Assembly: GCA_964247055.1 (NCBI GenBank)
Contig: OZ176050.1
Coordinates: 13,950,001 to 14,014,000 of the forward strand
Source of the DNA: Paragordius varius
Lineage: Eukaryota; Animalia; Nematomorpha
DNA length: 64,000 bases
Direction: 5' to 3'
The translations under genes and the position numbers were made by a program. The notes beneath the pieces were generated by a model, which made no database searches, was not told the origin of the DNA, and saw nothing but the letters and a program-made list of their open reading frames with translations. Positions 6,678 to 60,600 of this stretch are shown piece by piece (position 1 is the stretch's first letter; each line of letters starts with the position of its first letter).

Positions 6678-7305
6678 CCATTTGCGCTTCAATATTGTCC
6701 TTATACACTTCAAGTTGGTCCTTGAACAATTCAAGTTGGTCCTTGAACAATTCAAGTTGGTCCTTGAACACTTCAAGTTAGTCCTTGAACATTTCAAGTT
6801 AGTCCTTGAACATTTTAAGTTGGTCCATTGACTTTTTTGTTTTGTTTTTAACTTTTATCAAACAAATCGTAAAGCATTCATTTTTATCGCTTTTACCTAT
6901 TATTTTAAATAAATTTTAAATCATCACTTTTAATCATTAAACCATATATTTTCTTATAATTATTTTGGATATTTATAAAATTTTAACAAAATTAAAAAAT
7001 ATAAAATTATTCTGGGTTATTTATAAAAATTTTTTTTTAATCATTTAAATAATTTTGTTAGAATATTAGTTAGAAACAAAAAAGTGGTTTCCGAATAAAA
7101 TATTTTTTAATGTAATATATAAAAAATTAGGTTAAAAAATAATAAAATATAAAAATATATGGAAAAATTATGATTAAATCAAATTTAAAAAATTTTAAGG
7201 ACCAAATTGAAGTTTTCAAGGATCAACTTGAAGCGTTCAAGAACCAACCCGAAATGGTTTAGGATCAACATGATGCGTTCAAGGACACTTTTGAAGTGCA
7301 AATGA
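6678..7305. mobile_element. Family-B MITE (TA|CCATTTGC ends; 21-bp TTCAAGTTGGTCCTTGAACAA subterminal arrays)
   Basis: Tandem 21-mers at 6708-6830, inverted and more degenerate copies at ~7198-7300, TA at both flanks. Confidence 0.85.
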
Positions 7306-8143
7306 TATATGTGTCGCCTTGTAAGTGGATAGAAAATAATAAAAATATTTAGCACATTTTATATTTATAAATTTTATTATATTGGCACATCGTGCGAAAA
7401 CTCAATTGTCCCTATCCTTTCCCATTTCCTTCTAAACATATATTTGTTCAAAACTGGAATCAATTGATTGATAAAAACCGTAAATTATTTTCATAATAAT
7501 AAAAAATAAAACGAATTTTTTTTTTAAAAAACTGAAAAAGTAATAATTTATCCGTTGCACACATTAATATATCTAAACAATTAAATATATTTTTTTGATT
7601 TAGGGCATAAAAGGTATATTTAGGGAACAGCATGGCACCTGAGTCGAGTTTTGAGTATAACCAGTTTGGACGTTAATTAAAAAATTGACATAGAAACACA
7701 TGATTGAATACTTTTCAAATAACAGTTTAAATAACATAAATGATAATAAAAATTAAAATTAGGGCAGGCTTTTTTTCAGCCAAATGTTCCCTTGCTAAAA
7801 CATTTAAATTTTCAAATGAGTATATAATGCGTTTATAAAAGTGGATTTACAAGTAAAGTCAGTAGCAGCATCATTTACTACGTGTTGTATTTAAATTAAA
7901 GGTACTTATTTCATATTAAATAAAGTTCTTTATATGAAAAGATTTGGTGATTATATTCTAATTTTTATCCAAATTCCAATAGTATAGGGGAGGATTTCTT
8001 TGCCAAAAAATTAGTTATTAATATATATATATATATATATATATTAGATTGTAAATTTATTATTAGTTTGTATTAACAAAATACTGATCGAAAATCATTT
8101 TAAAACCATTAAATTTGTAAACAAGTTAAGCATTTTAAATATA

Positions 8144-8744
8144 CCATTTGCACTTTAAGAGTGTCCTTGAACACTTCAAGTTGGCCCTTGAACATTTCAA
8201 GTTGGTCCTTGAACAATTCAAGTTGGTCCTTGAACAATTCAAGTTGGTCCTCTTAAATTTATAAATTTTGATTTAACCATAATTTTTCCATTTATTTTTT
8301 AATTTTATTATTTATTAACCTAATTTTCTTTATTTATTATATATTTATTTTAAAAATAAAAAATTTTATGAAAACCACTTTTTTGTTTCAAACTATTTTT
8401 TTTCAATTAAACAAAATTATTGACTTTTAGATCTTTATAATAAAAAATTTTAATAATTATCCCAGAAAACTTATATATTTTTTCATTTCGTGATAAAATC
8501 TTATAAATATCCAAAATTATTATAAGAAATTAATAAAGATATACGGTTTCTCAAAGATTAAAAGTTTATATCGATTTAAAATTTATGTTAAATAATAAAA
8601 AATAGGTTAAAAACAATAAAATAGATGAATTATTTACGATTTGATTGATAAAAGTTAAAAACAAAACAAAAAAGTCAAAGGACCAACTTGAAGTGTTCAA
8701 GGGCCAACTTGAAGTGTTCAAGGACACTCTTGAAGTGCAAATGA
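8144..8744. mobile_element. Family-B MITE
   Basis: TA|CCATTTGCACTT...AAGTGCAAATGA|TA with 21-bp arrays. ORFs 8566-8766 and 8645-8845 are translations of the repeat. Confidence 0.85.
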
Positions 8745-22500: not shown

Positions 22501-25500
22501 TTATTTTTTCAGTATTATTTTAATTTAAAACAAAATTTTATTTTTTTAAAATAGTTAAAAATATAGGTAATTTTTAATCTTAAAATACATATAATTTATT
22601 TGAGGGTGAATTTGTTCTAGGGTGAATTTAAATTACCTAAGGGTAAATTTGAATTGTAATTGATATATATATAAACTAATTTCAATTTTATTATTGGGTT
22701 AAGCATTTTCCAATACTATAATTTAATAAAAATTTATATTAAAAGTGCCTTTCAATAATTAACTCTATATTTTTTATCAATGCTAAGAGAAAAGTAAAAA
22801 AATATGATGTTTTTAAATTTTTCCCATTAAATAAATTAGTAAATATATAAAGATTAACTTTTGAATAGATATGAGTATTTAAATGATTATAACACTCTTT
22901 ACGCTTAAATATACCATTTATATGTCAAATTCACCCTTAAATAATTCAAATTCCCTCCTATAATAAATAATGTTTTTCGGGCCAATACTAATCATTATTA
23001 ATATGAATTATATGGCATAGTTTATCACATTTTTTCGCTAATGTGTTAATTTTAAACGAAATTTAAAAGTTATAAAATAATATATAAGGTATTTTTAATA
23101 TTCAAAAACACATAATTTAGTATTGTGAATATAATTTGTTCAAGAGTGAATTCGAAATGTAAATAGTATATGTATGAATTGATAATTTGTCAAATGCGTG
23201 AAATTTGCCAGGTAAATGGATATTATTGAAAACATAATATAATTAAATAATAAATACTGGAAAGATGAAGGATTTTTGAGTAACTTCGTCAATAATTTGA
23301 ACTGCTTCAACTCTAAAATGTATTATTATATAATATATAAAAAATAAAAAAACCTTATAAAATCCTAAGTTAATGATAATTTTAAAAAAGCGATAATAAA
23401 GTTAAATAATAAAAATCATATTCGAGATATTTTAACAAATACGAGTTTAAGGAAAAAAAACTTGTAATTTTTAATATATATATATATATCTTTAAAATAT
23501 CATAGGGATATCTAATGAAAAATTATTTTATATTGATTAGGTCAAACGATAAAAATTTTATAAAAAAAGTATAAAAATATGTATTTACTCATATGGCCGA
23601 GCACAATATATGCTAAAAATGGCTGACAGATATTCTACCGCTATTTTAGCCTACAATATAAAATATATAAACATTTAAAAAAAATTATTTTTATACCATT
23701 TACAATTCAAATTCAATCTTGAACAAATCAATTTCACTCTTGGACAATTCAAATTCACCCTAAAAATAAATTGTGTTTTCGGGCTAATATAAGTCATTAT
23801 TAATTTGAAATATATTTTTTATAAACATAGTTTATTATTTTTTCAGTATTATATTAATATTAAACGTAATTTTTATTTTCATAATATAAAAAATATAGGT
23901 AATTTTTACTCTTGAACACATAATTTATTTTAGGGTGAATTTGAATTGTTCGAGGGTGAATTTGAATTGTTCTTGGGTGAATTTGAATTGTAAATGGTTA
24001 TAATAAAAAAATTTCCAAAAAAATTATTTTTATAAAATAGCACCTTATGTAAATCCGTGGCACTGCAATCAATTAAAATATTTTTGGTTTTGAGCGTTAT
24101 TTTGGAATGTTCGCCTATAAAATAAAATTTTAAATTTATTATTTTACAGAAAATTATTAATAAATGGAAACAAAAAATAATAATTTTAAAAAACTTATGT
24201 TCTTTTTTTAAGATAACAACCAACTAAAACTTGGTTTTTTAACTAAATAATTGTCTTAAGAAGAGGAGATTAAATGGTAAAAATCAATAATCAAAAAAAT
24301 ATTGTTTATTTACAGTAAGAATTGAATTTATACGGACAAAATGTGAAAATTAAAAGACAAATATTTTTTTCAAAAAGACAACCATACTTTTTTAATCTCG
24401 ACTCTTTTAAATAAACTCATTGTTTTAAACTACAAAGTATATTATAGAAATGTAAAAACACAATGAATTTATTTGATTGTAATTTAATATTTTAGATTAA
24501 GGTTTAAAAAAGTATGGTTGTCTTTTAAAAAAAATTTTTTTAAATTTTAACATTTTGTCCGTTTAATTTCAATTTTTACTGTATTGTAAAAAATATTATT
24601 ATCTTTTTTTTAATTTCTACATTAACCTTTACTCAATCACTAAAAGTAATACATAAAAATTAAAAAAATATGGTGACTGTCCTGATAAAAAAGGTAAAAA
24701 ATATTTGCAAGTTAGTATTAATAATATCATCAAAATTTAAAAAATGTACAGTGGCTGTCATTAACACTTGGATAAAACACAATGATTTTAGTCCTTCGAT
24801 TCAAATTGGGGTAGTTAGATACCCCAGGAGCTCATTAAAAATTAAATATTTCAAAAAATAGGGAATTACTTTGAAACCATGGGAAAAGTTTGCACTTATA
24901 TAGCATTAATAAACCAAAATATAATAAAATATTAATTCAAATTTGTATGATATTACTTATTAAGAGGTAAAACCCAAAGAAACATGACATATGTGAATAA
25001 GGTAAATATAAAAATGATATAAAATTTACGACTTTTTCTGTTTCTATCAATGTTAAATGTGATTACAATAAAAAAGTAAACTTTATTTTAGGATAAGAAT
25101 CAAATAAACACGATATTTTGCAAAAATGTTGCAAAACAAAAATGGGGCCGAAGTAGTTTGATATGGAACTTTTTTTCCAAAACTAAGTTTTATTTAGATA
25201 TTTTGGCCAAGTTATGTAATTTTTGTTAGGATAGAAGCATAAATTTAAATTGGAACCGTTTCTTTTAGTATATTATAAAAATTATCAACTTAAATTTTGT
25301 CTAGGGTATATAGATACCCCAATTTGAATCAAGGTGTTATGTATAAAAATATCTTTTAGTTTTTGCCTTTTAGCTCGAATTTTAATGTTTTTGCATATTT
25401 TTAAATATATCAAGAAGTGGGTATATCATTATAGAATATGATTTGTCTTAAAAGTATTTATTTACATTATTTTAAAAAAAACTTTAATCAAAATTAACTT

Positions 25501-25622: not shown

Positions 25623-25670
<48 letters not shown>

Positions 25671-28600
25671 AATTACATTTCACCCTTAAACAATTCAAAT
25701 TCACCCTTGAACAATTCAGATTCACCCTTAAACAATTCAAATTCACACTCAAATAAAATATATGTTTTTTAAGATTAAAAATTACCTATATTTTATATAT
25801 TTTTAAAAAATAAAAATCTTGTTTTAAATTAAAATATACTGAAAAAAATAATAAACTATACCATAACATATATTTCATATTAATAATGAGTTATATTAGT
25901 TCAAAAACACATAATTTGTTTTTAGGGTGAATTTAAATTGTTCAAGGGTGAATTTGAACTGTAAATGGTATATATATACAGAATGCATTTTAATGGTTGC
26001 TTATTTCACAATATAGTAGGGCAATTTGCAACACACAGTAGTGTATGGAAAAAAACAACAAAATGTTGAATAAACAATTATTTCCATTCTTTTTTCTATA
26101 CACTACTGTGTTGCATATTGCCCCACCATTAAAATTCGTAAAGTATTTAACAGCTTTCCCAAAAAAGATTGAAAAATTTAAATTTTCTTCCCCCTAAAAA
26201 ATTTATAAAATGCCTTGGAAATTAAGCAAAAAATTTTACATTATATAGTTCCATGAGTTGTTCAGCACTATATGGTGTAGATTGGTTTAATGGGATAAAT
26301 ACGATATCTTTGGGCGATTTAGCATCATATATCAGGGGTCCTTTTACCGTATCATAATCATGCGTGCCGATTGAAAGTAGGGTTCTTTTTCTGACAAGAA
26401 TATATAAAATAAAATGTTAATAATCAATACAATAGACCTAAAAAGTTTGAAACTAATTTTAAATATAAAGTTAACAAATTGAAATTATATGACAAGAATA
26501 AAATGTCTAATATTTAACAAAAGCTGCCATTACCTTAATTTCATCTAATCTAATACAATAGAATATAAATTTGAGTGTGCCAATATAAACTATACTATTG
26601 TATATATTGTTTCACTCAAATAAATAGGTTAGATTTGAGAAAAAGTTTTAACACTAGTGCGCGACAAAAATGCAAAACCATCTAAAATGGTGACAAAACA
26701 TACATTTTGTATTATTTATAGTAGGTGAAAACAAAAAATCTTAAAGCTCAATGGGGCAAATGAATTTTTAGGATTTAACCAATTTGAATAGTGACAAGCT
26801 ATATATTAATATCCAATATATTTTTATCAATAATAAGATGGCGTTTTTATATACTTATTACTTTATATTTAGGTTTTATGTTAATTATTGTTTTAATAAT
26901 TATTACATTAGTCTCATATTGTCCAACTTTCTAAAGAATTTTAAAAACAAAAACATAATCCAAATTTATTTAGTGTATAATTGATTTTTTCGACCATATT
27001 TTGTAATTACAATCATGTATATTTTTTATTGTTAGAAAAATATAAAAATTTTTGTTCGGATTGTAAAAAAAAGTTTTTTGACCAGCATTTGTTCCCAAAA
27101 GTGGGTAATTGCCCTCTTGCAAGTGCTTAGAAAAATCTAGGGGGCGAGGCTTGACCGAAAAATTACGAGAAACTATTTGAAAATTATGAATATGAACATA
27201 ATGTAAACGATTATTAGATAATTATTTAACACTCATACCTTTCCACTTTTTGTTTTAAATGCTGGATTTCAATATAAATAAACTAGTTTTGAAAGTTATT
27301 TTATCCAAATGTAAAAAGCTTATATTTTTTACAGTTTTGTCATTTATAAAGTCATAAATTGGGACAGCTTCAAAGCACGATTTAAACGATCAGCTGATAT
27401 TGAAATCAATATATATCAAGTTTTTGCTGGTAGCCTAAAATCATATAGCTAGGGTTTTTATAAAATCTCAGCTCAAAATATAACGTTTTTCATTTAACAC
27501 AGTTAAAAGACAAAATTTTTTATGAAACTATATTAAAATAATTTCTTAAAATTATTTACTAGATAAACTCACTATTAAAATCTTAACATTCATATTTTTT
27601 CAGTATATATCAGATTGAAACCACAAAATATTGTTTTTATTTATTTCTTTGTCATCTGGTTTATGAGTATATAAAAAATTTATACTGTGTTTTTTTAAAT
27701 CTTACATAAATGGGAATTATAAAGTATATAATTTGTGCAAAATAGGATTCAAAAGTAGTAGAATATTAACCAAAAATCCTTACAAATTCAAGTCTGTTTT
27801 AGGACACATTAATATTTTAAATAACAAAATTTTTTTAATAAGGGATTTGTTTTAGAATTTTATACAAATGTTTATTATATAAGATTTTCGATGCCCTTCT
27901 CTCAAACTTTTATGTATTTCAAAAATATGGTAGATTTTGTTCGATTCTTAAACATATATTTTAATATAAAATTATTATAACGTTGCCAAATTAAGGTATT
28001 CAGCACTGTATACACTTATTTTATTTTCAAGTAGTAAATTTTTGGTTCGTACATAAGTAGTTATTAATTGAAAATTAATTAATGGGTATTTAATTGGATC
28101 TGAACAAATTTCTTTGCAGAATGCTTTGATGCTAGTGATAAATTTTACCCATAATTTTTTTATTTTTAGGACAATATAATTTTACAAAATTTTAAAATAT
28201 GGCAACATTATCAAATTGACGTTATTGATGTAAATTTTTTATGTAGTTTTAAATAAAATTATTTTTTATATGACATATGATAAAAATTAATATAGCCGAA
28301 ATGTAAAAATCTACATATATTTTTTACCATACTTTTTGGATATTTTTGCCCAAACGATATAATTACAATTTTTAAATATATAATTGATCGTGTTACTAAT
28401 TCACATTTTACTGCTTATTTTGAAACGCAAAAAGGGTTATATATAAAAATCAAGGTTACTAAAAATGGTTGCTTTTAAAAATTGTTTTTTAATTTATTGT
28501 TTTATCTATATAACTTCAATTTTTAGCATGTATGTTTTATAGATAATATGGCAATTTTAAGATATTTATGGTATTTAATTTAAAAAAATATAAAAAAAAT

Positions 28601-36095: not shown

Positions 36096-38745
36096 ATGTT
36101 AAAATATTTATCCCGCGACGAAAAAAAGAAAAAGAATATTGATGTGATTGAAAGTGTAACTGATAGCTTAAAACGCTTATATAAACAAAAAATTTTACCA
36201 CTCGAACGTGAATACAAGTTTCATGAATTCCATTCGCCGGCACTTGAGGATGCAGATTTTGATGCAAAACCCATGGTTTTACTCGTTGGCCAATATTCGA
36301 CAGGGAAAACGACATTTATAAAATATATCCTGGAGCAAGATTTTCCAGGAATACGTATTGGACCCGAACCAACTACTGATTCTTTTATTGCTATCATGTG
36401 GGGCGAAACGGACACCATTATTCCCGGGAATGCTTTAGTTGTTGACCCTAAACGACAATTTCGACCGTTAAGTCGGTTTGGAAATGCCTTTCTAAACCGT
36501 TTCCAATGCTCCCTAGTTAACAATAGTGTGTTAAAACATCTAACGATAGTCGATACACCTGGTATTCTTTCCGGCGAAAAACAACGCGTAGATCGTGGTT
36601 ACGATTTCACCGGAATTCTTGAATGGTTCGCTGAAAGGTGTGATCGAATAATTCTACTGTTTGATGCTCACAAACTAGACATCTCGGACGAATTTAAACG
36701 TGGCATTGAATCTATCCGAGCCTATGATGAAAAGGTATAAAGATATTTTTTATAAAAAATGTTAAGGCATTTTGAAACCGTTTTTAATTTGGGATCTGTT
36801 TTAATGCTTCCGTAGGGCTGCGGTTTACATAATTTATTTAGCTAAAAAATAATTCCCACTGTTTCCTATAAACAGTAAAAAAAATGCACCATTTCTTATT
36901 TTTTATATAATGCGATTTTATCTTTAACCTTATTATTTTAAACAATAAAAAGTCCAAATTTATTACATGTTAAATGCAAACATTCTTGGATGTCATTTTT
37001 CCTTGAATTAAAAAATATGATTAAATTTCACGAATATATTTTTACCGCTGATACTATTGTCAATTTGAAACGTTTTTTTAGCTTAAAATATTTTACGATA
37101 AAAAATAATATCCATTTTGATATCCACCTTTTTTCTATCCCTTTAATAGATTCGTATAGTACTAAACAAGGCTGATGGTGTAGATGCTCAACAACTTATG
37201 CGGGTTTACGGTGCTTTGATGTGGAGTTTGGGGAAAGTTTTAAACACACCCGAAGTACCGCGCGTATATATTGGTTCCTTTTGGGAACAACCGCTAATAT
37301 ACGACGTTAATCGCAAATTGTTTGAAGCCGAATCCTATGACCTATTTGCCGACCTACAAAATTTACCCAAAACGGCTGCTGTTAGAAAACTCAATGACCT
37401 TATCAAACGTGCCCGACTTGCTAAAGTTAGTTACATATATATTATATGATGATTTAAATTCCATTTTTCTTCACCATTATAGACATGTTGTAGTAATTAA
37501 AAAATTATTTCTACCCATGAATTTGAAAAAAACAATAATAATTATTGATTTTTAACAAGTACACCTACTTTCATTCCAGTTTATTGTTGAAAAATGCATT
37601 TAACATCACTAAATTTTTTATATAATTTTGTTGAATTTAGTATTTAAATATACCTTCGAATCCTTGTTTAGACATAATTTATATATAAAATATTCAATTT
37701 TTTTATCGAACATTCTTAATATCATTTGTTATTGAATATTTAATCTATTTAGGTACATGCCTACATCATTAGCCATCTCAAGAAAGAAATGCCATCCATG
37801 TTTGGTAAAGAGAAAAAGCAGAAAGAATTGATTGCCAAACTTGATCAAATTTATGCCGAGTTGCAAAAAACATATCAAATTTCACCCGGAGATTTTCCTA
37901 ACCTGGCTCGTATGCAAAAATGTTTGGAATCACAGGATTTCGATAAATTTGAACGCTTAAAACCAAAACTGCTTGAAGGAGTGGATAATATGTTAGCATT
38001 TGACATTGCCAAACTCATGCAAATGGTATCCAATGCCAATGCAAACGCCGAAGCCATGATGGCAGAAAGTGGTAGTTTACGCTCAAATAAGTCCGTAACC
38101 GGTAAGGAAAGACCCTCTTTAAACACTCTGGGAGTTGGTTTAGGCTCCCGAGTAACAGGCGGAATCTTTGGGGGTGATACACCAACCACGAATCCTACAG
38201 TCATGGGTAATGATGTATTAGCAGCCTACAATAAATCAAATAGCTTATCAACGATGGACAATAACATTGATATGGATAGCAGCAATAGTAATGATTATAT
38301 ACGTACAAGTTTTGGTGGAAATAACACATCAATGAACAACGGCCCTTCCGCTCTTTCCGGGTTTGTACCCTCAACCCCTTTTTCCCGTTTCGGTGATAAA
38401 GGGGGTCGAGGCGAAGGCGAAGGTTTTAACCTTGGAGCGGGTGAGCCGGGTTGGATAGTTGATCGTATTCCTGAGCGGTCTGGCTACGATGCTACATTTG
38501 CGGCACTTGGCCCTATCCAAGGTCGGATAACAGGGGTCAAGGCCAAAAATGAGCTCATTCGTTCTAAGCTACCCAATGCCGTTTTGCACAAAGTTTGGAA
38601 TTTGGCGGACGTTGATAAAGATGGGTTTCTCGATGCCGAGGAGTATGCCCTTGCTTGTTATATTATCAAACTAAAACTTGATGGGGCCGATCTGCCTTCC
38701 GCGTTACCATACCATCTCATACCCCCATCCAAACGTGAACTGTGA
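36096..38745 (+). CDS. EHD1: EH-domain-containing protein (EHD/RME-1 dynamin-like ATPase), 3 exons
   Basis: Exons 36096-36734, 37150-37425, 37753-38745. Motifs: P-loop GQYSTGKT, GPEPTTD, DTPGILSG, LNKAD, and a C-terminal EH domain (SKLPNAVLHKVWNLADVDKDGFLDAEEYALA). Confidence 0.97.
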
Positions 38746-40209: not shown

Positions 40210-43200
40210 ATGAAAGTTCTCTCACATGTAAAATTATATAGTGCAAAATCATTATTAGGTGGTTTTGATTTCGACCTTTCCCACACTTTTGCAAACTATT
40301 GCGTAAAAATGTCATCAGCTTCTGAAATATTGGATTTTTTCCGAGTTTTTATTCCTAAACTTTCGAATGACAGTCACAAAGGACAATCGGGTAAAATTTG
40401 CGTGATTGGAGGCAGTCGAGAGTTAAAACAATTTATAAAATTTTATATAGATATACAGGAGCACCTTATTTTGCTTCGATTGCAGCCTTAAAGATCGGTG
40501 CAGATTTATCTCATGTTATATGCCCTAAAGATGCGGCCCCCATTATTAAATCTTATTCACCTGAATTGATGGTACATCCTCTTTTGTAAGATATTTATTT
40601 TTTAAAATGCGTTTTTGATCATTTTAATATTCAGTTTTTTTATATTTTTTTTATTGTTATTATCAAATATACATTTAAGGCTAAATTTATTTCCAAATTA
40701 AAAATATTTAACGTTTCGGCCTAACCAATAATACATAGCGTACACGATCACAAAAAAATTCTATTTAAATGCATAGAAAATATTTTACTAGATGCTACGA
40801 TTCACAAACGCTTCAAATATAACTATTTAGAAAAAATATCAATTAATGTTTATTTTATTTAATCCTTTATTTGCAAAGACCCTCCAAAAAATTATGGCGG
40901 CAAAGTTTAAATATTTTTTAAATTGTTTTTCTTTTAATATTATATTAATTATCACATAAAAGCTTCTATATTTTTCTATTATGGATTTTTTTTACTCAAA
41001 GGTATGAAGTCTTTAAAAATAAATGTAATTTTTTCTAAATATTTTTATAACAAACTTTTAGAGGCGAAAAAAACGAAACGGATCACATTATGGCGTTACT
41101 GGAAAAAATGCATGTTTTAATTATTGGACCAGGTCTGGGTAGGGATGAAACTATTTACCCCTTTATTTTGGTATAAAAATTCCATTTATATTTTAGAAAA
41201 TTATTGAAGTGGCGAAAGATTTGAATAAACCAATGGTGATTGATGCGGTAAGTATTACAGTTAACATTTAAAATATACGGACAAACTGTATAAAAGATAA
41301 AAATTTTTGTAAAATGGCAACCATATTTTTAACCTTTGTATTTTGTATGTAAACTAAATAATTAAAATTGTAAAATACTGAGAGTGTTACCAATTTAATT
41401 ATCTATTACATACTTTGCAGTTCGTAACAATGTGTAATTAAATAAAAATAGTTTTAAAAAAAATATAACGGTTTTTGAAAAAATTTTTTGTCTGTATACT
41501 TTCATTTTTACTGTAAAATTTTACTGTAAAATATTTTTTATTTAATTTTCTGCATTTTTTAATTTTATTTTTTTAATATATTTTTTTTATTTATATATAT
41601 TTATTAATGAAGGATGGTTTACATATAGTGACCAAACATTACGATATAGTTCAGGGTTATCGCAAAATTATTTTAACACCCAACCCCAATGAATTTAAAC
41701 AAATGTACTCTACTGTGGTAAATACCCATTTATTTGTATTTGCAATTTTAAAACAATGTTCACTTATTTTTCTTTCATATTGTTTTCAATTTTATTTGAA
41801 ATATAAAAGTATCTTTTTTCGGATTTTTTAAGAAAAATTAGGACAAAATAATGAAATTTTGTTGATTATATTATTTTCATTATCAATGTGTAAATCTAAA
41901 ATTTAATGAAAGTGGTACGTACTATTTTATTAAAAAAATAATTTTTTACCACAAAACAATTTTTTATACCATGAACTAAACTGATATCAAAATTATTACG
42001 AAAATACTGTTGATTAACAAAAATCGAAATATTATAATTTATATTATTTTTGCTGAATTATTCCATATATAATAATTTTTTTTTATATATTAGGCATTTT
42101 TATTATAATCTTCCGATTAATTAACAGGTTAAAAAGATTGATTCTTTTGATGCTCAAGAAAGTCAAGTTACGGAATTGGCTAAAAAATTAAGTGGTCCAA
42201 CCATTTGTCGCAAAGGACATTACGATATTATAAGTGATGGCACAATCAGTATTAATCAATTAAATTACATTATTGGAAAAAAAGATTAAACAAGAGTGTG
42301 TTTGTGAAAAATTGGTTATTTTATAAATTTTATAATTAATTAATATATATATAATATATAAAAACAATTCATTATTAATGAAATTCTTTGGATTTAATAT
42401 GGATGTATATGGAAAACAAAAACTATAAAATATTTTTTTAAATTGCTTTTAAATTTTATACAAAACCCATGTAAACGTTTTTGTATTATATTATTGTTTA
42501 TATTAATTTTCAATCTGTTCTCCACTTCGCAACTCTAGATGAGTTTTATTTAAATATCCAATTTTAATTGGTGTCAATAACGATTTGTCTTGATTATTTT
42601 AATTATATGTATAATTCTATTGTTTTTTTATTGACAAATTTTTTTTTAATATGTAAATATAGAATATGACTCCAAAATTTTATAAAACATTTTAATTGAT
42701 CATAAATATATTAATATCAAATTCAACAATTTCAACAATTTTTTTTATTTCTAGCCGTAAAATGCGAAGCTGAAGGAAGTCCCAGACGCTGTGGAGGTCA
42801 AGGAGATTTGCTATCTGGTATGACAGGTGTCTTGCTTTATTGGACCTTAAATTTTGTGGAAAAAAACTTGCGTGAAAATATTAATGTTAAATCGTGTGAA
42901 ATTTCTGGCCATTTACGCGATACCAATGAACCAAAGTAGGTATAATTTTGTAGCGTTCAAGTAAAAAGAAACCGTCTTTTAAAAGCTTCAATTGCTTAAA
43001 GATAAAATGTTAATTATTTTATAGTAAAAAATTAGAGTTTTTCAATAATAAACTCATTTTTTTAAATAATCAAGATAAAATGTTAGTAATCGTTTTTTTA
43101 TAATTTTTAGGTGGTATTTTACTTTGCAGATAATATAATTTGCGTCTATGATTAAGTTAAGTTTTTTTATTAACTGCAAATAGTATATTTAGAGTTAGAT

Positions 43201-44004: not shown

Positions 44005-44715
44005 CACAATATTTATGAACCAAAAATTATTTTATATTTTATATAATCACATGCTATATATATTCAAAGTGTGATTGATACAATAGAATAAATATTGAAA
44101 TTATGCAGAGTAAAAAAACTAAAAAAGAGAAATATTTTTTGTGTAAAAAATAACCATACTAATTCAAACTTTTATTTTTTCGATATTAATTGTTTATTTG
44201 TAATTTTAAAAGATAAAATTGGCCTGTTTTACCAATATACATCTCTATTTCAAACTTTGCAATATAAAACATTTAGTTTTAACAAACTCATGATGTAAAA
44301 AGTATGATTGTTTTTTAGTAAAAACATATTTGTATTTATAATCGTTTTTATGTCCGTGTATTTACTGTAATATAACTAATACTCAAATATTTATATTGTA
44401 AAAACCATACACCTATCTAAACCATAAACTATTGTTTTCAGTAATTGCAGAATAAAGAACAAGTCTAACACAATTGATTTATACAACACTTGTTTAGAAA
44501 AAAAAATCAAAGTTTCAGGCTTCAGTTAAAACTAAATATAATATAATATATATATATATATATATATATACATTTTTGAGTTTATTACCATAAACTATAT
44601 AGTTGCCGAATAAAGGCCAAGGCCAACACGCTTAATTATGGAATACTTGGTTATGTAGCAAAAAAAAATCAAAGTTTCAGGCTTCAGTTAAAATTCAAAT
44701 TAAATATAAATACAT

Positions 44716-47700
44716 TTATTGAGTAAGTTTATTGTAATCTTGATGGTGATTTGCCGATTTGACATATTCGTGATACTTAAGTGAACCATCGTGATTACTA
44801 TCAAACATTAGTTTGGCATCCACTTCACGAATTAAAAATTCTTCAAAGGGATTAATCACATACCCTGTATCTTGAACTGTCAAACGGACAAAAATTAAAT
44901 TAGAAACTTGAAATTATACGGACAAAAGGTAAAAAAAATAATGAAACAAGTATGTTTTTTTTAAAAGACAACACTTTTTTAACATGTTATTTCTTTATAA
45001 CTGATATATACCATTTACAGTTCAAATTCACCCTTAACCAATTCAAATTCACCCTCGAACAATTCAAATTCACCCTTGAACAATTCAAATTCACCCTCGA
45101 ACAATTCAAATTCACCCTTGAACAATTCAAATTCACCCTTGAACAATTCAAATTCACCCTCGAACAATTCAAATTCACCCCTAAACAATTCAAATTCACC
45201 CTTGAACAAAATGCTTATTTTTTGATTCATATTATCAAATTAAAAGGGAAAAAACTTTGGGAATTATTTTGCCATTTCTTAAAATTTTTTTAAATGGGTT
45301 AATAATAAAATTCAAAGCGGAAATACCTATATTTAATAGAAAATTTCATAATTTTTCCGTTTTTTGATGTTCCAAGATTATAATACAAACATTAAAACAA
45401 TTATTAGCCATAAATCATTTATTAATATGTTTATAATAAAGTAAATAATAGCGTTAAAATTATAATTATTGGTGCACATAAACACGTCCCTCCGCAGCAT
45501 TTGCAAGATTGTGGTTTACATAATCACAAAATCCTTTAACATCCGTTGCTGTTATTTGTAGGCATCCATAGTTAACTAAATCTTTCAATGATGCATTACT
45601 TTCATTACTAATTGCGGAGCATACATTAGATTTTATTTTGGAGAATGCGTTTTCTATTGGATTGAGCATGTAGCTATATGGAGCCAAAAATGAAATTTTG
45701 TAGTGGTATCCATCAGCTATATTGTTTAAAACTTCCCTTTTGTGAATCTTTGCATTATCCAAAATAAAATGAATTCCTTCTAAATTCAAAGAGGTGAGAA
45801 ATTCACATAAATCTTTGAAAAAATTAGAAAATATGTCTCCATTTACATTTCTCTCACATTCTATTCTGTGAATTACAATTCCCTGTGACCCCATAGCTGC
45901 AATAAGGGTTATGTTTCTTCCTTTTATGTTAGGAAGTTTAACAATGGCCCTTGTACCGCGTTTAGATCTTCCAAAATTTCGCCTAAGGTGGTTGTGGAAA
46001 CCACATTCATCAATGAAAACCACCTTTGTTGTATCAAAATTAAACGTTTCGAGAAACCAAATGGCATACTCTTTTCTTTTTCTAATTGTATCCGAATCAT
46101 TTATTTTGTTAATCTCTGTATGAGTTTTTTTCAGTGTTATCGCTAGTTTTTGGATTATATTTTGAATGGTACTGCAAGATATGCGAAAATCGCATTCATG
46201 TTCTAAAAATAATTTTAGCGATTTTAGAGTGATTAAGGGGTTTTCGCTAATTTTTTCTTCGACTATGTTGACAATGCGATCCGTAATCTTTTCATATCTC
46301 TTTCCACCTTGCGATTTACACTTAATATTTTTTTTGTACTTCATAACAAATGATTTGGCGGTATTATAATTAATATCCAACGATTCAGCCACCATTTTTA
46401 TCGAATCCCCATCCATAATTGTTGATTTTATTAGGCGCTTCTTATCATGTTCACTAAGTTTCGTATAATTCTTTTTACCATCTATCTTAGATTAAAAATA
46501 TACCAATTAATATAATTTCACTGTCTTGATTTGTAGTGTTAGCCATTTATTTTACAAAAAATTATTGTCTGCTTGTTGGGTAGTTAAAAATATTAAATTA
46601 ATTAAATATATGTTATAAAGGAAAAATTACACGTCGCATAAAATATACCGTCTGCTTTGACTATAAGAATATTTTTAACTACCCAACAAGCAGACAATAA
46701 TTTTTTGTAAAATAAATGGCTAACACTACAAATCAAGACAGTGAAATTATATTAATTGGTATATTTTTAATCTAAGATAGATGTCAAAAAGAATTATACG
46801 AAACTTAGTGAACATGATAAGAAGCGCCTAATAAAATCAACAATTATGGATGGGGATTCGATAAAAATGGTGGCTGAATCGTTGGATATTAATTATAATA
46901 CCGCCAAATCATTTGTTATGAAGTACAAAAAAATATTAGGTGTAAATCGCAAGGTGGAAAGAGATATGAAAAGATTACGGATCGCATTGTCAACATAGTC
47001 GAAGAAAAAATTAGCGAAAACCCCTTAATCACTCTAAAATCGCTAAAATTATTTTTAGAACATGAATGCGATTTTCGCATATCTTGCAGTACCATTCAAA
47101 ATATAATCCAAAAACTAGCGATAACACTGAAAAAAACTCATACAGAGATTAACAAAATAAATGATTCGGATACAATTAGAAAAAGAAAAGAGTATGCCAT
47201 TTGGTTTCTCGAAACGTTTAATTTTGATACAACAAAGGTGGTTTTCATTGATGAATGTGGTTTCCACAACCACCTTAGGCGAAATTTTGGAAGATCTAAA
47301 CGCGGTACAAGGGCCATTGTTAAACTTCCTAACATAAAAGGAAGAAACATAACCCTTATTGCAGCTATGGGGTCACAGGGAATTGTAATTCACAGAATAG
47401 AATGTGAGAGAAATGTAAATGGAGACATATTTTCTAATTTTTTCAAAGATTTATGTGAATTTCTCACCTCTTTGAATTTAGAAGGAATTCATTTTATTTT
47501 GGATAATGCAAAGATTCACAAAAGGGAAGTTTTAAACAATATAGCTGATGGATACCACTACAAAATTTCATTTTTGGCTCCATATAGCTACATGCTCAAT
47601 CCAATAGAAAACGCATTCTCCAAAATAAAATCTAATGTATGCTCCGCAATTAGTAATGAAAGTAATGCATCATTGAAAGATTTAGTTAACTATGGATGCC

Positions 47701-48857
47701 TACAAATAACAGCAACGGATGTTAAAGGATTTTGTGATTATGTAAACCACAATCTTGCAAATGCTGCGGAGGGACGTGTTTATGTGCACCAATAATTATA
47801 ATTTTAACGCTATTATTTACTTTATTATAAACATATTAATAAATGATTTATGGCTAATAATTGTTTTAATGTTTGTATTATAATCTTGGAACATCAAAAA
47901 ACGGAAAAATTATGAAATTTTCTATTAAATATAGGTATTTCCGCTTTGAATTTTATTATTAAACCATTTAAAAAAATTTTAAGAAATGGCAAAATAATTC
48001 CCAAAGTTTTTTCCCTTTTAATTTGATAATATGAATCAAAAAATAAGCATTTTGTTCAAGGGTGAATTTGAATTGTTTAGGGGTGAATTTGAATTGTTCG
48101 AGGGTGAATTTGAATTGTTCAAGGGTGAATTTGAATTGTTCAAGGGTGAATTTGAATTGTTCGAGGGTGAATTTGAATTGTTCAAGGGTGAATTTGAATT
48201 GTTCGAGGGTGAATTTGAATTGGTTAAGGGTGAATTTGAACTGTAAATGGTATATATATCATTTACAGTTCAAATTCACCCTTAAACAATTCAAATTCAC
48301 CCTTGAACAATTCAAATTCACCCTGAAACAATTCAAATTCACCCTTGAACAATTCAAATTCACGGAACAATTCAAATTCACCCTCAAATAAATAACATGT
48401 TTTTTAAGATTAAAAATTACCTATATTTTAACATATTTTTAAAAAATAAAATTTTGTTTTAAATTAAAATAATACTGAAAAAAATAATTAATTATGCCAT
48501 AAAGATATATTTTATATTAATAATGAGTTGTATTAGTTCGAAAACACATAATTTATTTTTAGGGTGAATTTGAATTGTTCGAGGGTGAATTTGAATTGCT
48601 CAAGGATAAATTTGAACTGTAAATAATATATATATATATATATCAATTATAAAATATATTATTGATTGTGTCACCGATATATACATCTCTATTTCACATA
48701 TTTTGTAAGTTCAAAATATGATTTACATTTAGATAAAAATCGTGATTGAAAAAGCATGGTTGTTTTTTGAAAAAAAAACATATTTGTCCTTGTATTTTTA
48801 CGTTTTGACCGTATAATTTTAATTTTTATTGTAAATTGATATTAATAAGCTAAATAA

Positions 48858-48892
<35 letters not shown>

Positions 48893-49485
48893 TATTTTAT
48901 TAAAAAAGAAACAAGATTTAGATCTTCTAAAAACGTTAAAATCATAATTGTTCAATAGATTCAATTAGAATTTGGATTATAAAACCAATGATTGGGCTGT
49001 TAGTGTAATATTAAATTATCCCTTGATAATTTTGGTAAAATAATTTTTTTTTAGCTGATTCAGTTATTAAAAATCTACTTTTTAAAAAATATAAAAATTG
49101 TATAATGATAAATTTATTTTTTATCCTAAAATCTAGTCAAACTCTTAAAATAGTTATTTTATGGTAATTTAAAGTTAAAAACCGATAGGCATTTTTTCAT
49201 GAGCTATGGCATATGCGATTTCAAGTCCATCTAAATGTTGATCCCCATTCTTATCGTGGACGCCAAAATAAAATTTTGTTAACTCTTCTTCGCTTAACTT
49301 CTTAGGATCTTGAACAAACCCATGTAAATCATGATATAAATGTCTAAAAGTTTAATATATATATATATATATATATAATACTCTTTAATATCATTTGGAT
49401 TTTGTTTGAAATCTGCAAAACCTTGTTGATTATACGCACAACTAAACAGTGTTAAAAAAATTGCACATATGACACGCGTAGACAT
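44716..49485 (-). CDS. MCFD2: MCFD2-like secreted two-EF-hand protein (LMAN1/ERGIC-53 cargo co-receptor), 3 exons
   Basis: Exons 49485-49382 (signal peptide MSTRVICAIFLTLFSCA), 49343-49183 (LSEEELTKFYFGVHDKNGDQHLDGLEI) and 44876/44870-44716 (EVDAKLMFDSNHDGSLKYHEYVKS...*). Junction phases are consistent. Confidence 0.88.
45021..45209 (+). repeat. Nine tandem 21-bp units (TTCAAATTCACCCTTGAACAA), left terminal array
   Basis: Units start at 45021, 45042 ... 45189. Confidence 0.97.
45466..46546 (-). CDS. Intact DD34E Tc1/IS630-type transposase, 352 aa if the 22-nt intron is spliced
   Basis: Exon 46546-46504 (MANTTNQDSEIILI), GT-AG intron 46503-46482, exon 46481-45466. Two N-terminal HTH-like regions; catalytic VFIDECGF / ILDNAKIH / LNPIEN with 34 residues between the second D and the E. 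Confidence 0.9.
46716..47795 (+). pseudogene. Second transposase copy, frameshifted by a 1-bp deletion (A7 versus A8 at ~46927-46933)
   Basis: Same exon/intron layout (46716-46758, intron 46759-46780). The shifted frame stops at TAG 46996-46998, and the downstream catalytic region is identical to the left copy. A homopolymer sequencing error cannot be excluded. Confidence 0.8.
48052..48240 (-). repeat. Nine tandem 21-bp units, right terminal array
   Basis: Exact mirror of the left array, including the order of unit variants. Confidence 0.97.
48260..48626. mobile_element. Family-A MITE abutting the palindromic element in the same TA run
   Basis: TATATATA|TCATTTACAGTTCAAATTCACCC, five to six units at the left and three at the right, followed by (TA)n. 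Confidence 0.85.
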
Positions 49486-49548: not shown

Positions 49549-55203
<5,655 letters not shown>

Positions 55204-57246: not shown

Positions 57247-57635
57247 TAGAAAGGGCAGGGACGTAATCAACGCCAGCTTATGGCTCGCGCTTACTGGGAA
57301 TTCCTCGCTCAAAATAATTACGATTCCCTATCCCCATCGAGAAAGAGTTTCAGCGGATTACATAGAAATCGGACAAGGGAAATATCACGCTAATTCTTTC
57401 AGTGTAACCCGCGTCTCACTCCGACATCTAAGGGCATCACAGCCCTGTTATTGCTTAATCTCGTACACTGAAAATATTGTCGCAAGATCCTTCGCTGACG
57501 AGAGACGTCAACGTTCTAGTAAGCAGGTTAGATTGTTTCTTATCGGACTCAATCAGACAAATCCTCCACCAACTAAGACCGGCCATGCACCACCACCCAT
57601 TGAATCAAGAAAGAGCTATCAATCTGTCAATCCTT
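57247..57635 (-). pseudogene. Dispersed, degenerate 18S rRNA fragment (3' half, about V7-V8)
   Basis: Reverse complement contains AGGATTGACAGATTGATAGCTCTTTC, GGTGGTGCATGGCC, GCAATAACAGG..GTGATGCCCTTAGATG and GCGTTGATTACGTCCCTGCCCTTT, with substitutions at normally invariant positions. Confidence 0.92.
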
Positions 57636-57639
57636 AAAT

Positions 57640-60600
57640 TAGATCTGTTTACCAGATTCCCAACGCCAGGGAAAACGAACCTGTAACTCTAAAATGGGTG
57701 CTAGACAAAGCCTTCAATTATGAAAAGGCACATCAATTGGCAACAATAGATGGCAATTGCATACAACAGCTCGGACGTAGAACAAGTGTCCCTGCAGTTT
57801 AGGCCATGCACCCGGCAGATGCCCAGCTTGGGGTCAATTTTACAAGTACCAAGGCTGGAATCACTTTCTACCGTACTGTAAGAAGAAAATGATTAGTCAA
57901 CGTTCAGCATATCAAATGTGGAGCTACCCCTAAGATAACAATAGTAATAATGGTACAATGCGCATGATTATGGACACAGTTTCAAGTTATCTATAATTGA
58001 TTAAGCGTGGGAAAAAATTGCAGAGCCTTTGTTGCAACAAACAGGCCCAGATTTGTATAGCTATGATGGACAAAGAATTAATTCTAAGGGTAGGTGTATG
58101 GTCAGGGTACAAGATGGTGAAACAAAACCTGTGGCGTGCGTGGTGGTGATCGGCATTACCCCAGCAATCCTTGGTTGGGATTGGCTAAAAGAATTTCCGA
58201 ATGCCATAACACAGATGATAAGTTGTCGTAATAAATTTAATTCCCTTTTTTTGAAAAGTTAGGATGTTTCACTTGAGAGCCTATAAGTGTCGCCGCATCC
58301 CGATACCATCAAAAGAAAAAGTCTGAAATTTAAAGACTTGAAGCGGACATAATCATACCATTTCTCGGACTGAGAAATTAGCCTGGGCCACCCTTATTGT
58401 TTGTATAACAAAAGTGAATGATGCCTTAAGATTATATGCAGATTATCATGTTTCAATAAATCCGCATCTGGTAGATGATGGTTATAATATACCGAGATTT
58501 GACAAATTAGTTTCCAAAATAGGATTAGGACATCCTTTTTGGTCTATTTAAAAGACGCATATTTGCAATTGCCAATAGATCAGGAAAGTCAAAAGTTGCT
58601 AACTATTACCACACCCCCAGGGTATTTCACAGAAGAGTTCCCTTTGGCCTAACGAGCGCCACCTGCATTTTTTAAAGATTAATGGATAAGACTTAAGTAA
58701 CCGCCCGGGAACAGCTGTATATTTAGACTATGTTTTTTAACAGGGACAAACCCAACGAACATAAAAGAAACTTGGTATTTAAGCGTCTAGACCAGGCCTT
58801 TGAACTTTTGTAACTTCCGACCCATTTATGATTGCGAGTTTTCTAACGACCCCAACAATTATGAAAGAAAAATAAATTAATATTTTTTGATGATATATCT
58901 TTGGGTAACAATATACATATACATATAAAAAATATAAATTTAGTATTCGTTTGGAAGCGTATAAAAATTTAAATTGAAATTTGCACAAATGTTATAGATA
59001 TGTTTTGTTATGGTTTCAAAAACAAAAGTGGATTCTGACCGTCTTGATTCTTTTGAATATATCCAAGTAGGTGTTAAATATTAAATTAAAGTTTACGTTA
59101 AAAATTTAATGAGATGGATGTGCCTGTTTTTTATTGCATAACAAATCAAATATTGGTGTAATGTTGAAAACTGCTGGACGTAAGACCTATTCAACATTTT
59201 TTATCGCTGAACGATAATGGAATTAATGTATGTTAAAGCTGAGAAAAATATATATGTGGTGCTAAGTGGCAGAAGTGCATTTAACGCCATATCGGCGACT
59301 GTGGGAAATTCAGTTCCAGCCGTTCCAAAATTCAGTTAAGGGCCTTTTTGGAATTGTTGTTTTAGAGTCACACGAAAGTTCAGCAAAATCCTCTTGAGCT
59401 TTAAGTGGCAAATGATCAATCTCACTTAAGCCAATCCAAAACGGCTTTCGTTTCCAAATGCTGATCCATTTAATAAAAGTTTCAATTTTATCGTCTGAAG
59501 TAAATATATCCCAATTTTTTCCTTGAAGAGACAAGTTAAGATCGCTTAACTTCGCAAAAATATCTGACAAATAGCACAGCTTGGATAGCCACAAGTCAAT
59601 TTTAAAAAAAAAGCAGCAAATTTACATTTTCGTTCAGTTAAAATTTCGATCTCGTCCTTTAATAACAATAATCTTTTTAAACTTTGACCTCTTGACAACC
59701 ATCTCTGCATGTAATAACAAAGTTGTGTTTTAGAAATCCGTATCCTTACAGAAATTTGAAAATAAGCGACTGTTAAGGGCATGGCTCTTATCAAATTGAC
59801 TTTAACAGCATTCTGACTAACATCGTTCGATTCTGGTGCTATTTTTTTGCTGCAAAAGCCTCTCGGTGAATAAGGCAATGGGTAAAAGTTATATGATCAT
59901 AATGAGCAGCTTAAAACATGATTTTAAAACCAATATTTTCGTTATTCTTCGCTCTTGCACCATCTGTGCATCACAGCAATTTTTCCATAGTAAACCTTCT
60001 GCTTTTAAAAATTCGTCATCAAATTCTGAATAACATGCACTGTTCACAAACAATGGCTAAAGGAAAATAACACGAAATGTATTAGTTCCTTCAAAATAAC
60101 ACTTTGAAATTTTGTTGATAATATTTATCAGGATTATTTTGGTTTCGAATTGACAAAATAAATCTACATTTTATAAATTTGTATAACATCTTCTGATTCA
60201 TAGTAAATTTATACAACATTATGATCTGAATTGAAATGCTGGTAAACAGTCTTCCGGAACCAGAAGATTTTATGATATATATCTACGGTGAATGTTATTT
60301 TTTCTTGATAGCAATAATTTTACAAGTTAAAAAACGTTTTTTGTTAAATTGTATTTTTATCACTCGCGACCCCATAATTTAGCTACGCGACCGCAAATGG
60401 GGTCGCGACCCATAGTTTAAGAAGCCCTGGTCTAGACGAATCTGGTTTAAAATTAAGTAAAGCAGACTACAACATTTTCAACCCTCCGTAAGTTATTTAG
60501 ACTATGATACATCAAACAACGGCATCTCACCAGCCGCCGATAAAGTTAAAGCCATACAAGACTTCCCAAGACCCAATGACAAAACAACACTCATTCTTAG

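Follow-up and report, generated by a model that had tools for sequence, protein, structure and literature searches.

Background

Tc1-like elements of the IR/DR type, such as Sleeping Beauty, Tc3 and Minos, carry two transposase-binding sites in each of their 200-460-bp terminal inverted repeats (TIRs) and a single central open reading frame (ORF). In foldback and other long-TIR families, FB-NOF among them, any coding region occupies the central loop that separates the arms. Foldback and other long-TIR elements, exemplified by FB of Drosophila and by Galileo of the P superfamily (PMC4168063), have very long arms with tandem sub-repeats at their outer ends, and their families include abundant related copies that are short, hairpin-forming and MITE-like.

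Inverted duplications of transposase genes have been described in maize. Mu killer (PMC3440606) derives from an autonomous plant DNA transposon of the Mutator superfamily and combines two copies of one TIR with a transposase gene duplicated in inverted orientation. Only part of mudrA is duplicated and no transposase is encoded, transcription of a neighbouring gene can read through the locus, and both hairpin RNA and silencing have been demonstrated. Composite insertions of Ac/Ds (hAT superfamily) arise through aberrant transposition or repair, which creates inverted transposon duplications that can be transcribed into dsRNA (bioRxiv 10.1101/2020.01.07.897926); they consist of fractured Ac fragments within larger rearrangements.

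Here we describe a palindrome in a 64-kb window of the Paragordius varius genome (the window being the whole stretch of DNA analysed, 64,000 nucleotides) in which a Tc1/IS630-type transposase gene occurs in each arm. A preliminary reading of the sequence alone had not recognised this architecture from described families. This overstated its novelty, since Mu killer and the Ac/Ds composites are inverted duplications of transposase genes. A literature search returned no described Tc1/mariner element with a whole ORF in each arm, a result that does not in itself prove that none exists.

With Mu killer, the locus shares a TIR that is present twice and a transposase gene duplicated in inverted orientation. 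It differs in belonging to the Tc1/IS630 group, in residing in an animal and in having duplicated the whole gene, with one copy intact. Unlike the Ac/Ds composites, it is compact and has two perfect outer ends. As in foldback elements, its inverted arms are long and bear outer tandem sub-repeats, and abundant short MITE-like relatives exist, but its loop measures 73 nt and is non-coding, the genes being located in the arms. It resembles the IR/DR elements in having several direct repeats at each end (transposase-binding there, putatively so here), but each of its ends has nine 21-bp units, and its ORF is duplicated. The departure from the plan of one ORF between short TIRs concerns the architecture and not the protein, as the ORF is present twice, inside the arms.

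Results and discussion

Structure of the palindrome

Repeat finding and pairwise alignment identified two arms, 45004-46594 and 46668-48257, that are reverse complements of 1591 nt each, with five differing columns and 99.7% identity (Table 1). The differences are found at 45298/47963, which lies in the 3' UTR, at 46322/46939, in a 1-nt indel (T8 at 46328-46335 versus A7 at 46927-46933) and in a dinucleotide (46477-8/46784-5); the 21-bp arrays of both arms are 100% identical. The symmetry detected by the repeat finder runs 7 nt past the end assigned in the preliminary reading because the flanks are (TA)n. Comparison with the ends of MITEs in the window and of distant relatives fixed the true terminus, TA/CCATTT (the slash marks the element boundary), at 45011 and 48250. 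The palindromic element measures 3240 nt (approximately 3.25 kb; 45011-48250), with arms of 1584-1591 nt. TA is present on both sides, but within (TA)n tracts from which a target duplication is inseparable.

From the outside inwards, each arm consists of the terminus, 9.2 copies of a 21-bp repeat forming a putative transposase-binding array, approximately 256 nt, the stop codon, the transposase and its ATG. The two genes are arranged head to head, with the ATGs (46546 on the minus strand and 46716 on the plus strand) 169 nt apart, an interval that the preliminary reading took for a putative shared bidirectional promoter. The preliminary reading had proposed inverted arms with about five differences around a 73-nt spacer, symmetry ending at TA/CCATTT and head-to-head genes with 169 bp between their ATGs, and all of these features are borne out by our alignments and by the ends of the MITEs and relatives.

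The 73-nt spacer has no second match within the 64-kb window and none among JGI metagenome contigs. MITE arrays occur elsewhere in the window, which holds no additional transposase copies or palindrome centres. We found no convincing microhomology at the ends of the spacer. A mini-palindrome, AATTAATT, lies at its edge (46596-46603).

Table 1. Coordinates of the palindrome, the abutting MITE and the exons of the host gene in the window
Feature	Position	Strand	Evidence
Last exon, MCFD2-like host gene	44716..44876	-	Alignment; 3' splice site 44877-8
TA, left insertion site, in (TA)n tract	45009..45010	.	Sequence; TA also flanks the ends of relatives
Left outer terminus CCATTTACAG... and 9.2 copies of 21-bp repeat (45017-45209)	45011..45209	+	TRF; MITE-end alignment
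3' UTR of left transposase copy, 256 nt	45210..45465	-	Approximately 250 nt in relative L001
Left transposase exon 2 with stop codon, intact	45466..46481	-	ORF translation, homology, HMM
Left intron, 22 nt, GT..AG, putative	46482..46503	-	Sequence; homology upstream of ORF Met; host introns of 29 and 38 nt in the window
Left exon 1 (ATG at 46546, 14 codons + 1 nt)	46504..46546	-	Spliced reading
48 nt upstream of left ATG; inner end of left arm	46547..46594	.	Repeat finding, alignment
Unique 73-nt spacer (hairpin loop)	46595..46667	.	Alignment; spanned by X3 and X5 contigs
48 nt upstream of right ATG; inner end of right arm	46668..46715	.	Repeat finding, alignment
Right exon 1	46716..46758	+	Spliced reading
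Right intron, 22 nt, putative	46759..46780	+	Spliced reading
Right exon 2, frameshifted	46781..47795	+	ORF listing, alignment
3' UTR of right transposase copy	47796..48051	+	Alignment
Right 21-bp array (9.2 copies) and outer terminus ...CTGTAAATGG	48052..48250	-	TRF; MITE-end alignment
(TA)4 between palindrome and next element, includes right TA	48251..48258	.	Sequence
Adjacent same-family MITE with 6 and 2.9 copies of 21-bp unit at its two ends	48259..48633	.	TRF; end alignment
Exon 2, MCFD2-like host gene	49183..49343	-	Alignment, splice sites
Exon 1 (signal peptide), MCFD2-like host gene	49382..49485	-	Followed by 38-nt intron 49381-49344

The palindrome is not an artefact

Palindromes are a known class of artefact in long-read and amplified libraries, where they may represent fold-back chimeras or unremoved hairpin adapters, and the A7/A8 difference between the arms is typical of homopolymer error. 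However, a 133-nt contig from an independent second sample (X3; 46565-46697) and a 192-nt contig obtained under another organism label (X5; 46534-46728) both span the spacer and the inner ends of both arms. The palindrome is therefore real and not an artefact of the assembly. In addition, the unique flanks of the two arms differ from each other and belong to a single intron of a real gene, both ends are genuine transposon termini, and the spacer does not resemble an adapter. An origin in assembly or library preparation is already largely refuted, and we consider it extremely improbable. The occurrence of the centre under another organism label also indicates that the assembled individual is not alone in carrying the rearrangement.

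The same structure could have been produced by two conventional elements that inserted independently head to head and then lost their inner ends; the family targets TA tracts and its elements cluster, as illustrated by the MITE adjoining the right end. Against this scenario, both arms break off at an identical point of the element (46594 and 46668), a search of the window detected no remnants of inner TIRs, and independent truncations would not yield arms and arrays of the observed identity (99.7% and 100%, respectively). Two separate insertions are thus hardly tenable as an explanation.

An IS630/Tc1 transposase with one intact copy

The predicted protein of the palindrome is a DD34E transposase of the IS630/Tc1 group, in keeping with the type assigned in the preliminary reading. 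It matches Pfam DDE_3 (1e-22) and the NCBIfam IS630 model (112.2 bits, compared to a cutoff of 100), and its catalytic triad is composed of D172, D256 and E291, with 34 residues from the second D to the E. For the N-terminal HTH, Pfam matches are sub-threshold only, and the N-terminus aligns with homologues carrying PF00292/PF13518. The best match in a collection of 5.8 billion proteins shares 43% identity, and exact or near copies are absent from that collection.

Homology to the relatives continues upstream of the Met of the main ORF, and only splicing would connect this upstream reading to an ATG in frame. On these grounds, and given host introns of 29 and 38 nt in the window, we infer a putative 22-nt GT..AG intron that would join an ATG to the main ORF. 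Exon 2 of the left copy comprises the 316-aa ORF and 21 in-frame codons upstream of its Met, and the spliced gene would encode an intact protein of 352 aa, as compared to 346-364 aa for the homologues. In the right copy, the spliced reading ends after 86 aa owing to the loss of 1 nt in the A run at 46927-46933. The 7-A form of this stretch is unconfirmed by the listed contigs of any other sequencing run. The frameshift falls in a homopolymer. The earlier observation of a transposase gene in each arm holds, with two features that the preliminary reading had not noted: the ATG is joined to the main ORF through the putative 22-nt intron, and the right copy is frameshifted in the assembly.

Derivation from a conventional element

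Relatives of the transposase (36-43% identity) were found in the microsporidian Enteropsectra breve (L001) and in the metagenome loci L002, L003 and L007. They share with the palindrome the TA/CCATTT termini, TIRs made of approximately 21-bp direct repeats, the DD34E signature and, putatively, an N-terminal paired-like HTH. In contrast to the palindrome, where the 1.58-kb "TIRs" each hold a whole gene, they are 1.4-1.66 kb long and have a single ORF between TIRs of 60-135 nt; furthermore, the 5' TIR that they possess is missing from the palindrome. The distance from the stop codon to the 3' array is approximately 250 nt in L001 and 256 nt in the palindrome, and approximately 104 nt separate the 5' array from the ATG in L001, as compared to 121 nt (48 + 73) upstream of the ATG here. 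Because these relatives with matching termini are ordinary one-ORF elements, the comparison identifies the palindrome as a derived form of a conventional element, and it agrees with the earlier suggestion that the locus arose when one half was duplicated in inverted orientation.

We therefore favour, as the probable account, that the palindrome is a young, low-copy, rearranged version of a conventional IS630/Tc1/mariner DD34E transposon of the TA/CCATTT 21-bp-repeat clade, generated by inverted duplication. A single such event would have removed the 5' TIR and replaced it with an inverted copy of the segment between the 3' terminus and a point 48 nt upstream of the ATG. We infer that, while the gap left by excision was being repaired, a strand switch from one 21-bp array to the identical, inverted one may have occurred, with end joining as the final step. 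On this model, the native 5' subterminal DNA of one copy would possibly be preserved in the 73-nt spacer and the adjoining 48 nt. The product retains two perfect outer ends and, in at least one arm, an intact gene for the 352-aa transposase, and for this reason could, in principle, still be cut and pasted and supply transposase to the very abundant MITEs with matching ends. As a single locus, the palindrome can be accounted for by known routes of repair and rearrangement.

Copy number and possible spread

To estimate how often the components of the palindrome occur, we relied on word depth, which reaches 2-3 million in the 21-bp arrays and 1300-2900 in the arms, compared to 170-360 in the flanks; the excess of the arrays is roughly ten-thousand-fold. 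These values suggest approximately 4-9 arm equivalents and approximately 1-3 copies of the centre, although word depth is not copy number and the AT-rich flanks (approximately 20% GC) may be under-covered. The word depth of the spacer in X1 and X3 is approximately twice that of the flanks, which could reflect two loci or a coverage bias against the AT-rich flanks.

Alternatively, the palindrome itself may be what transposes within a small family: once formed, it would have been excised at its two identical ends and inserted at further TA sites, so that its architecture is propagated and not a dead-end rearrangement. The perfect and identical outer ends and the intact transposase copy are compatible with such behaviour, as are the depth of the X3 spacer contig (145, compared to 57-80 in the flanks), the X1 centre bins at roughly 2-3 times flank depth and the inner arms at approximately 4 times flank depth, as would be expected of two palindromes. 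The centre also occurs under organism label B. Yet the caveats on word depth apply here as well, neither another locus nor a further set of flanks came to light, and run X6 (organism C) has transposase pieces that are 99.6% identical but contains neither the centre nor the 5' third of the gene. A propagating palindrome is on balance unlikely, while deserving serious consideration. Joints skipping 3.1-3.3 kb were evaluated as candidates for an empty-site allele and rejected: all fall within 21-bp arrays that the palindrome has in common with the adjoining MITE, and their sides of 19-28 nt are read as cross-matches between arrays and not as empty sites.

Position within a host gene intron

The palindrome and the abutting MITE are contained in the 4306-nt last intron (49182 to 44877) of an MCFD2-like gene, whose 3' splice site (44877-8) is 134 nt from the palindrome. 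This intron is GT..AG and phase-consistent, and the alignment of the host protein with human MCFD2 extends over the exon junction; the other host introns in the window measure 29 and 38 nt. The MCFD2-like gene is a housekeeping gene, and the genome is very AT-rich, with normal introns of 20-40 nt. A search with the EHD gene yielded no close relative, the best match reaching approximately 60% identity over the EH domain. The 22-nt intron of the transposase and a GC content of 24% prompted us to consider a ciliate genetic code, which was rejected as the host genes (EHD, MCFD2 and NAXD-like) are of animal type and use the standard code.

Since the palindrome is inside a host intron, it is likely to be transcribed by read-through from the host gene, and, by analogy with maize Mu killer, MCFD2-like transcripts should carry a hairpin of 1.6 kb. 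The locus might act mainly as a silencer, with a perfect hairpin in the host pre-mRNA being diced into small RNAs that silence the transposase family in trans. In addition to its position entirely within a GT..AG intron, the locus combines a TIR present twice, an inverted transposase duplication and a placement that would allow neighbour-gene read-through, as does Mu killer (PMC3440606), and Ac/Ds composite insertions act similarly (bioRxiv 10.1101/2020.01.07.897926). On the other hand, none of the sampled words of the palindrome were found in the RNA runs of the species, and transposase copies that are nearly identical are still present at several-fold depth, which indicates that any silencing has not brought decay. 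We regard a silencing function as improbable on present data, if conceivable.

A broader and decidedly doubtful reading is that cut-and-paste transposons of several superfamilies have repeatedly become near-perfect palindromes in this genome and that the palindromic form is selected, not accidental, and persists in introns. If true, the transcribed hairpin would feed small-RNA silencing or draw together the splice sites of a kilobase-sized intron, and the palindrome described here would be one instance of a selected form that still encodes a transposase.

Link to the MITEs

The ends of the palindrome and of the MITEs are either identical over their first 30 nt or so or differ at 1-3 positions, and the 21-bp unit ACAATTCAAATTCACCCTTGA is common to both. 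Because of this match, the palindrome is a credible source of transposase for the abundant CCATTT/21-bp-array MITEs, and the role of MITE driver put forward in the preliminary reading gains plausibility.

Conclusions

The abundant CCATTT/21-bp-array MITEs gain a concrete candidate transposase and, with an apparently intact copy at hand, binding and excision can be tested directly. The locus is also the counterpart, in an animal and in the Tc1/IS630 group, of Mu killer and the Ac composites, the hairpin loci that start transposon silencing in maize. As it joins a complete gene to two perfect ends, one and the same locus could be both driver and silencer of its family.

Structure and coding capacity of the palindrome

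The giant palindrome described in the sequence-only reading was confirmed by a repeat finder and by pairwise alignment of one arm against the reverse complement of the other: two arms of 1591 nt each (45004-46594 and 46668-48257), differing in five columns, enclose a 73-nt spacer. The spacer and the adjoining 48 nt have no significant match elsewhere within the 64-kb window. The terminus is TA/CCATTT at 45011 and 48250 (the slash marks the end of the element); the (TA)n of the two flanks makes the symmetry appear to run 7 nt further. The same start is common to every end of the CCATTT family of MITEs in the window, short elements with these ends and a 21-bp unit, and to distant relatives from other organisms, which upholds the outer ends as first read.

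The 316-aa ORF of the left arm matches Pfam DDE_3 (1e-22) and the NCBIfam IS630 model (112 bits, over the 100-bit cutoff). Its homologues are 346-364 aa long. The helix-turn-helix segment conserved at their N-termini aligns to codons that precede the first methionine of the ORF, whose frame, when extended upstream, reaches a stop before any ATG. A putative 22-nt intron would connect the ORF to an ATG, and the predicted spliced protein of the left copy has 352 aa, with D172, D256 and E291 forming DD34E. An intron this short is plausible in the host genome, since introns of 29 nt (NAXD-like gene) and 38 nt (MCFD2-like gene) occur in host genes of the window. The proposed distance of 169 nt between the head-to-head ATGs holds, as does the Tc1/IS630-type identity: judged from its protein and ends, the palindrome belongs to IS630/Tc1/mariner.

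The right copy, as assembled, is one A short in an A run, and its reading ends after 86 aa. Contigs of two other runs show the 8-base form over the frameshift site, and the 7-base form is listed in none of the Logan contigs of four runs placed on 44300-48950. On this evidence, the lost base is perhaps peculiar to the haplotype assembled, or else an error in the homopolymer.

Coordinates of the palindrome, its host gene and other features, as window positions
Feature	Position	Strand	Details
MITE copies/fragments	33-110, 6673-6821, 8139-8245, 22379-22670, 22909-23164, 23692-24002, 25662-25975, 48259-48633		
Inverted-repeat pair	1046-1183 / 2242-2379		138 nt, 71%
Inverted-repeat pair	1947-2121 / 3617-3791		175 nt, 81%
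EHD (EH-domain ATPase) gene	36096-38745	+	
NAXD/CARKD-like (NAD(P)HX dehydratase) gene	40210-41831	+	29-nt GT..AG intron, 40421-40449
MCFD2-like host gene	44716-49485	-	three exons
Host exon 3	44876-44716	-	
Host exon 2	49343-49183	-	
Host exon 1	49485-49382	-	encodes signal peptide; then 38-nt intron 1
21-bp array, left end	45017-45209		9.2 copies (Tandem Repeats Finder)
21-bp array, right end	48052-48244		9.2 copies (Tandem Repeats Finder)
Left-arm ORF	45466-46416	-	316 aa
Putative intron, left copy	46482-46503	-	22 nt, GT..AG; mirrored at 46759-46780
ATG, left copy	46546		mirrored at 46716 (right copy)
Spacer	46595-46667		73 nt
Arm difference	45298/47963		substitution, 3' UTR (pairwise alignment)
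Arm difference	46322/46939		substitution (pairwise alignment)
Arm difference	46328-46335 / 46927-46933		T8 vs A7, 1-base homopolymer length (pairwise alignment)
Arm difference	46477-8/46784-5		dinucleotide (pairwise alignment)
ORF	49668-49835	+	divergent to MCFD2-like gene, ~180 nt between starts
Reverse-transcriptase ORF fragments and SSU rRNA piece	53858-54774 and 57426-57641	-	one shared entry

Other features of the window

At least eight copies or fragments of MITEs with the TA/CCATTT ends and the 21-bp unit lie in the window, and MITE arrays reach word depths in the millions in the runs of this species. In the NAXD/CARKD-like gene, joining the exons recreates the conserved GGSxEYTGAPY motif. 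The best database relatives of the EHD gene reach only ~60% identity over the EH domain, which points to a divergent animal lineage as host. The sequence of the ORF at 49668 resembles the beginning of a JAB1/MPN protein of the CSN5 or RPN11 type. A GC-richer block (54-60 kb, 35-39% GC) contains the reverse-transcriptase fragments together with 216 nt of eukaryotic SSU rRNA, which match model positions 1229-1478 in Rfam with 108 bits; they are possibly from an rDNA-carrying retroelement or an rDNA-specific element. Both inverted-repeat pairs (~1.1-1.5 kb apart) are possibly other foldback-type elements.

Reality and copy number of the locus

An artefact of assembly or library is very unlikely, because contigs cross the centre in two further runs and the arms bear different unique flanks that together make up a single intron of a real gene. 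In X3, a second sample with the same species label, a 133-nt contig (46565-46697) covers the full spacer and reaches 30 nt into each arm; in X5, which carries another organism label, a 192-nt contig (46534-46728) spans the centre.

Depth of the unique flanks was 167-313 in run X1, where adding the two alleles at 44414 gives 364, and 57-80 in X3. The corresponding values were 1345-2945 and 360-383 for arm contigs, and 2.2-3.3 million and 0.3-0.75 million for the 21-bp arrays. The spacer contig had a depth of 145 in X3; it is not listed in X1, where two centre bins give ~800-950 by back-calculation. Taken at face value, these figures correspond per haploid genome to ~1-3 copies of the centre, ~4-9 of the arms and thousands of the arrays, word depth not being the same as copy number. 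Because the flanks are far more AT-rich than the element, a bias in coverage may account for a twofold excess of the centre. A diverged copy (~91% identity over 46157-46411) occurs at about single-copy depth.

Contigs of X6, labelled as organism C, match parts of the gene's 3' two-thirds with up to 99.6% identity (45745-45969, 47146-47276 and 47536-47686, one difference per 131-225 nt). Neither the flanks, nor the gene's 5' third, nor the palindrome centre is represented among them. Such near-identity of the transposase family across organism labels implies that the family spread recently or was transferred horizontally, or that samples were mixed. Contigs of the four runs contained no believable empty-site joint at the palindrome; joints skipping ~3.1-3.3 kb were rejected because they fall within arrays that the abutting MITE also carries.

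Conventional relatives and origin

The closest proteins, 36-43% identical, come from Strongyloides, several microsporidia, Hermetia and many metagenome contigs. We compared the loci of four relatives: L001 in the microsporidian Enteropsectra breve (2769-4430, 1.66 kb), and L002 (~1.5 kb, limits not exact), L003 (182-1625, 1.44 kb) and L007 (411-1823, 1.41 kb) on metagenome contigs. All four are one-ORF elements with TA/CCATTT ends and TIRs of 60-135 nt made of ~21-bp direct repeats, and none is palindromic. On this comparison of sequences, the palindromic form is a derived state rather than a character of the clade. Between the microsporidian and metagenomic relatives and the palindrome, the terminus and the ~21-bp period of the TIRs are conserved and the repeat sequence is not, with proteins ~40% identical.

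The equal end points of both arms exclude two independent insertions and indicate one event; together with conventional relatives sharing the termini, they support the inverted duplication originally proposed. We infer an ancestor with the order 5' array, ~121 nt, gene, 256 nt, 3' array. This layout fits the distances in L001, where the 5' array ends ~104 nt ahead of the ATG and ~250 nt separate the stop from the 3' array; in the palindrome the latter distance is 256 nt, and the stretch ahead of an ATG measures 48 + 73 = 121 nt at most. The ancestral 5' array would have been swapped for an inverted copy of the segment that begins 48 nt ahead of the ATG and extends to the 3' terminus. The route may have been repair of a gap after excision: a strand primed from the 5' side would copy the array, switch by re-annealing to its identical, inverted counterpart at the 3' end and continue inward from there; the 3'-primed strand would copy the gene and stop on reaching the 5' array, and end-to-end joining of the two would yield the palindrome. 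Alternative transposition with re-replication is another known route, described for maize Ac/Ds (bioRxiv 10.1101/2020.01.07.897926).

Comparison with known systems

Conventional IS630/Tc1/mariner elements have one ORF between short TIRs, an organization from which the palindrome departs. Foldback elements share its long arms with outer tandem repeats, but their coding DNA sits in the loop, whereas here the genes lie in the arms. In architecture, maize Mu killer comes closest (PMC3440606): it has two copies of one TIR and an inverted duplication of the transposase gene, and read-through from a flanking gene produces a hairpin RNA that silences MuDR. The palindrome differs from Mu killer in superfamily, kingdom, its complete and apparently intact gene and its intronic position. 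Ac/Ds composite insertions are also similar (bioRxiv 10.1101/2020.01.07.897926). To call the architecture unrecognised was thus an overstatement. The literature searched contained no description of a Tc1/mariner element with a whole ORF in each arm.

Host gene and possible activity

The MCFD2-like gene around the palindrome encodes a secreted-type product of 141 aa with two EF-hands, which matches human MCFD2 (PDB 2vrg) with E 5e-11 over residues 16-129, in an alignment that crosses the exon 2/3 junction. Intron 2 (4306 nt, GT..AG ends, phase-consistent) holds the MITE at 48259-48633 and the entire palindrome, whose left end and the 3' splice site are 134 nt apart. The contrast between this transposon-filled intron and the 38-nt intron 1 is striking in a tiny-intron genome.

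With two perfect ends, nine putative binding sites at each and at least one intact gene, the palindrome could still be mobilised, perhaps as a unit. It is also a plausible source of transposase for the MITEs, as the sequence-only reading suggested, since they have the first 30 or so nt and the 21-bp unit in common with it. The bidirectional promoter that the same reading placed between the genes is a hypothetical one, and divergent transcription from the centre would yield two identical sense mRNAs rather than dsRNA, and hairpin RNA would arise only via read-through, for example from the host gene, whose orientation is that of the intact (left) transposase copy. Since the palindrome lies inside intron 2, the host pre-mRNA should include both arms and could form a 1.6-kb hairpin.
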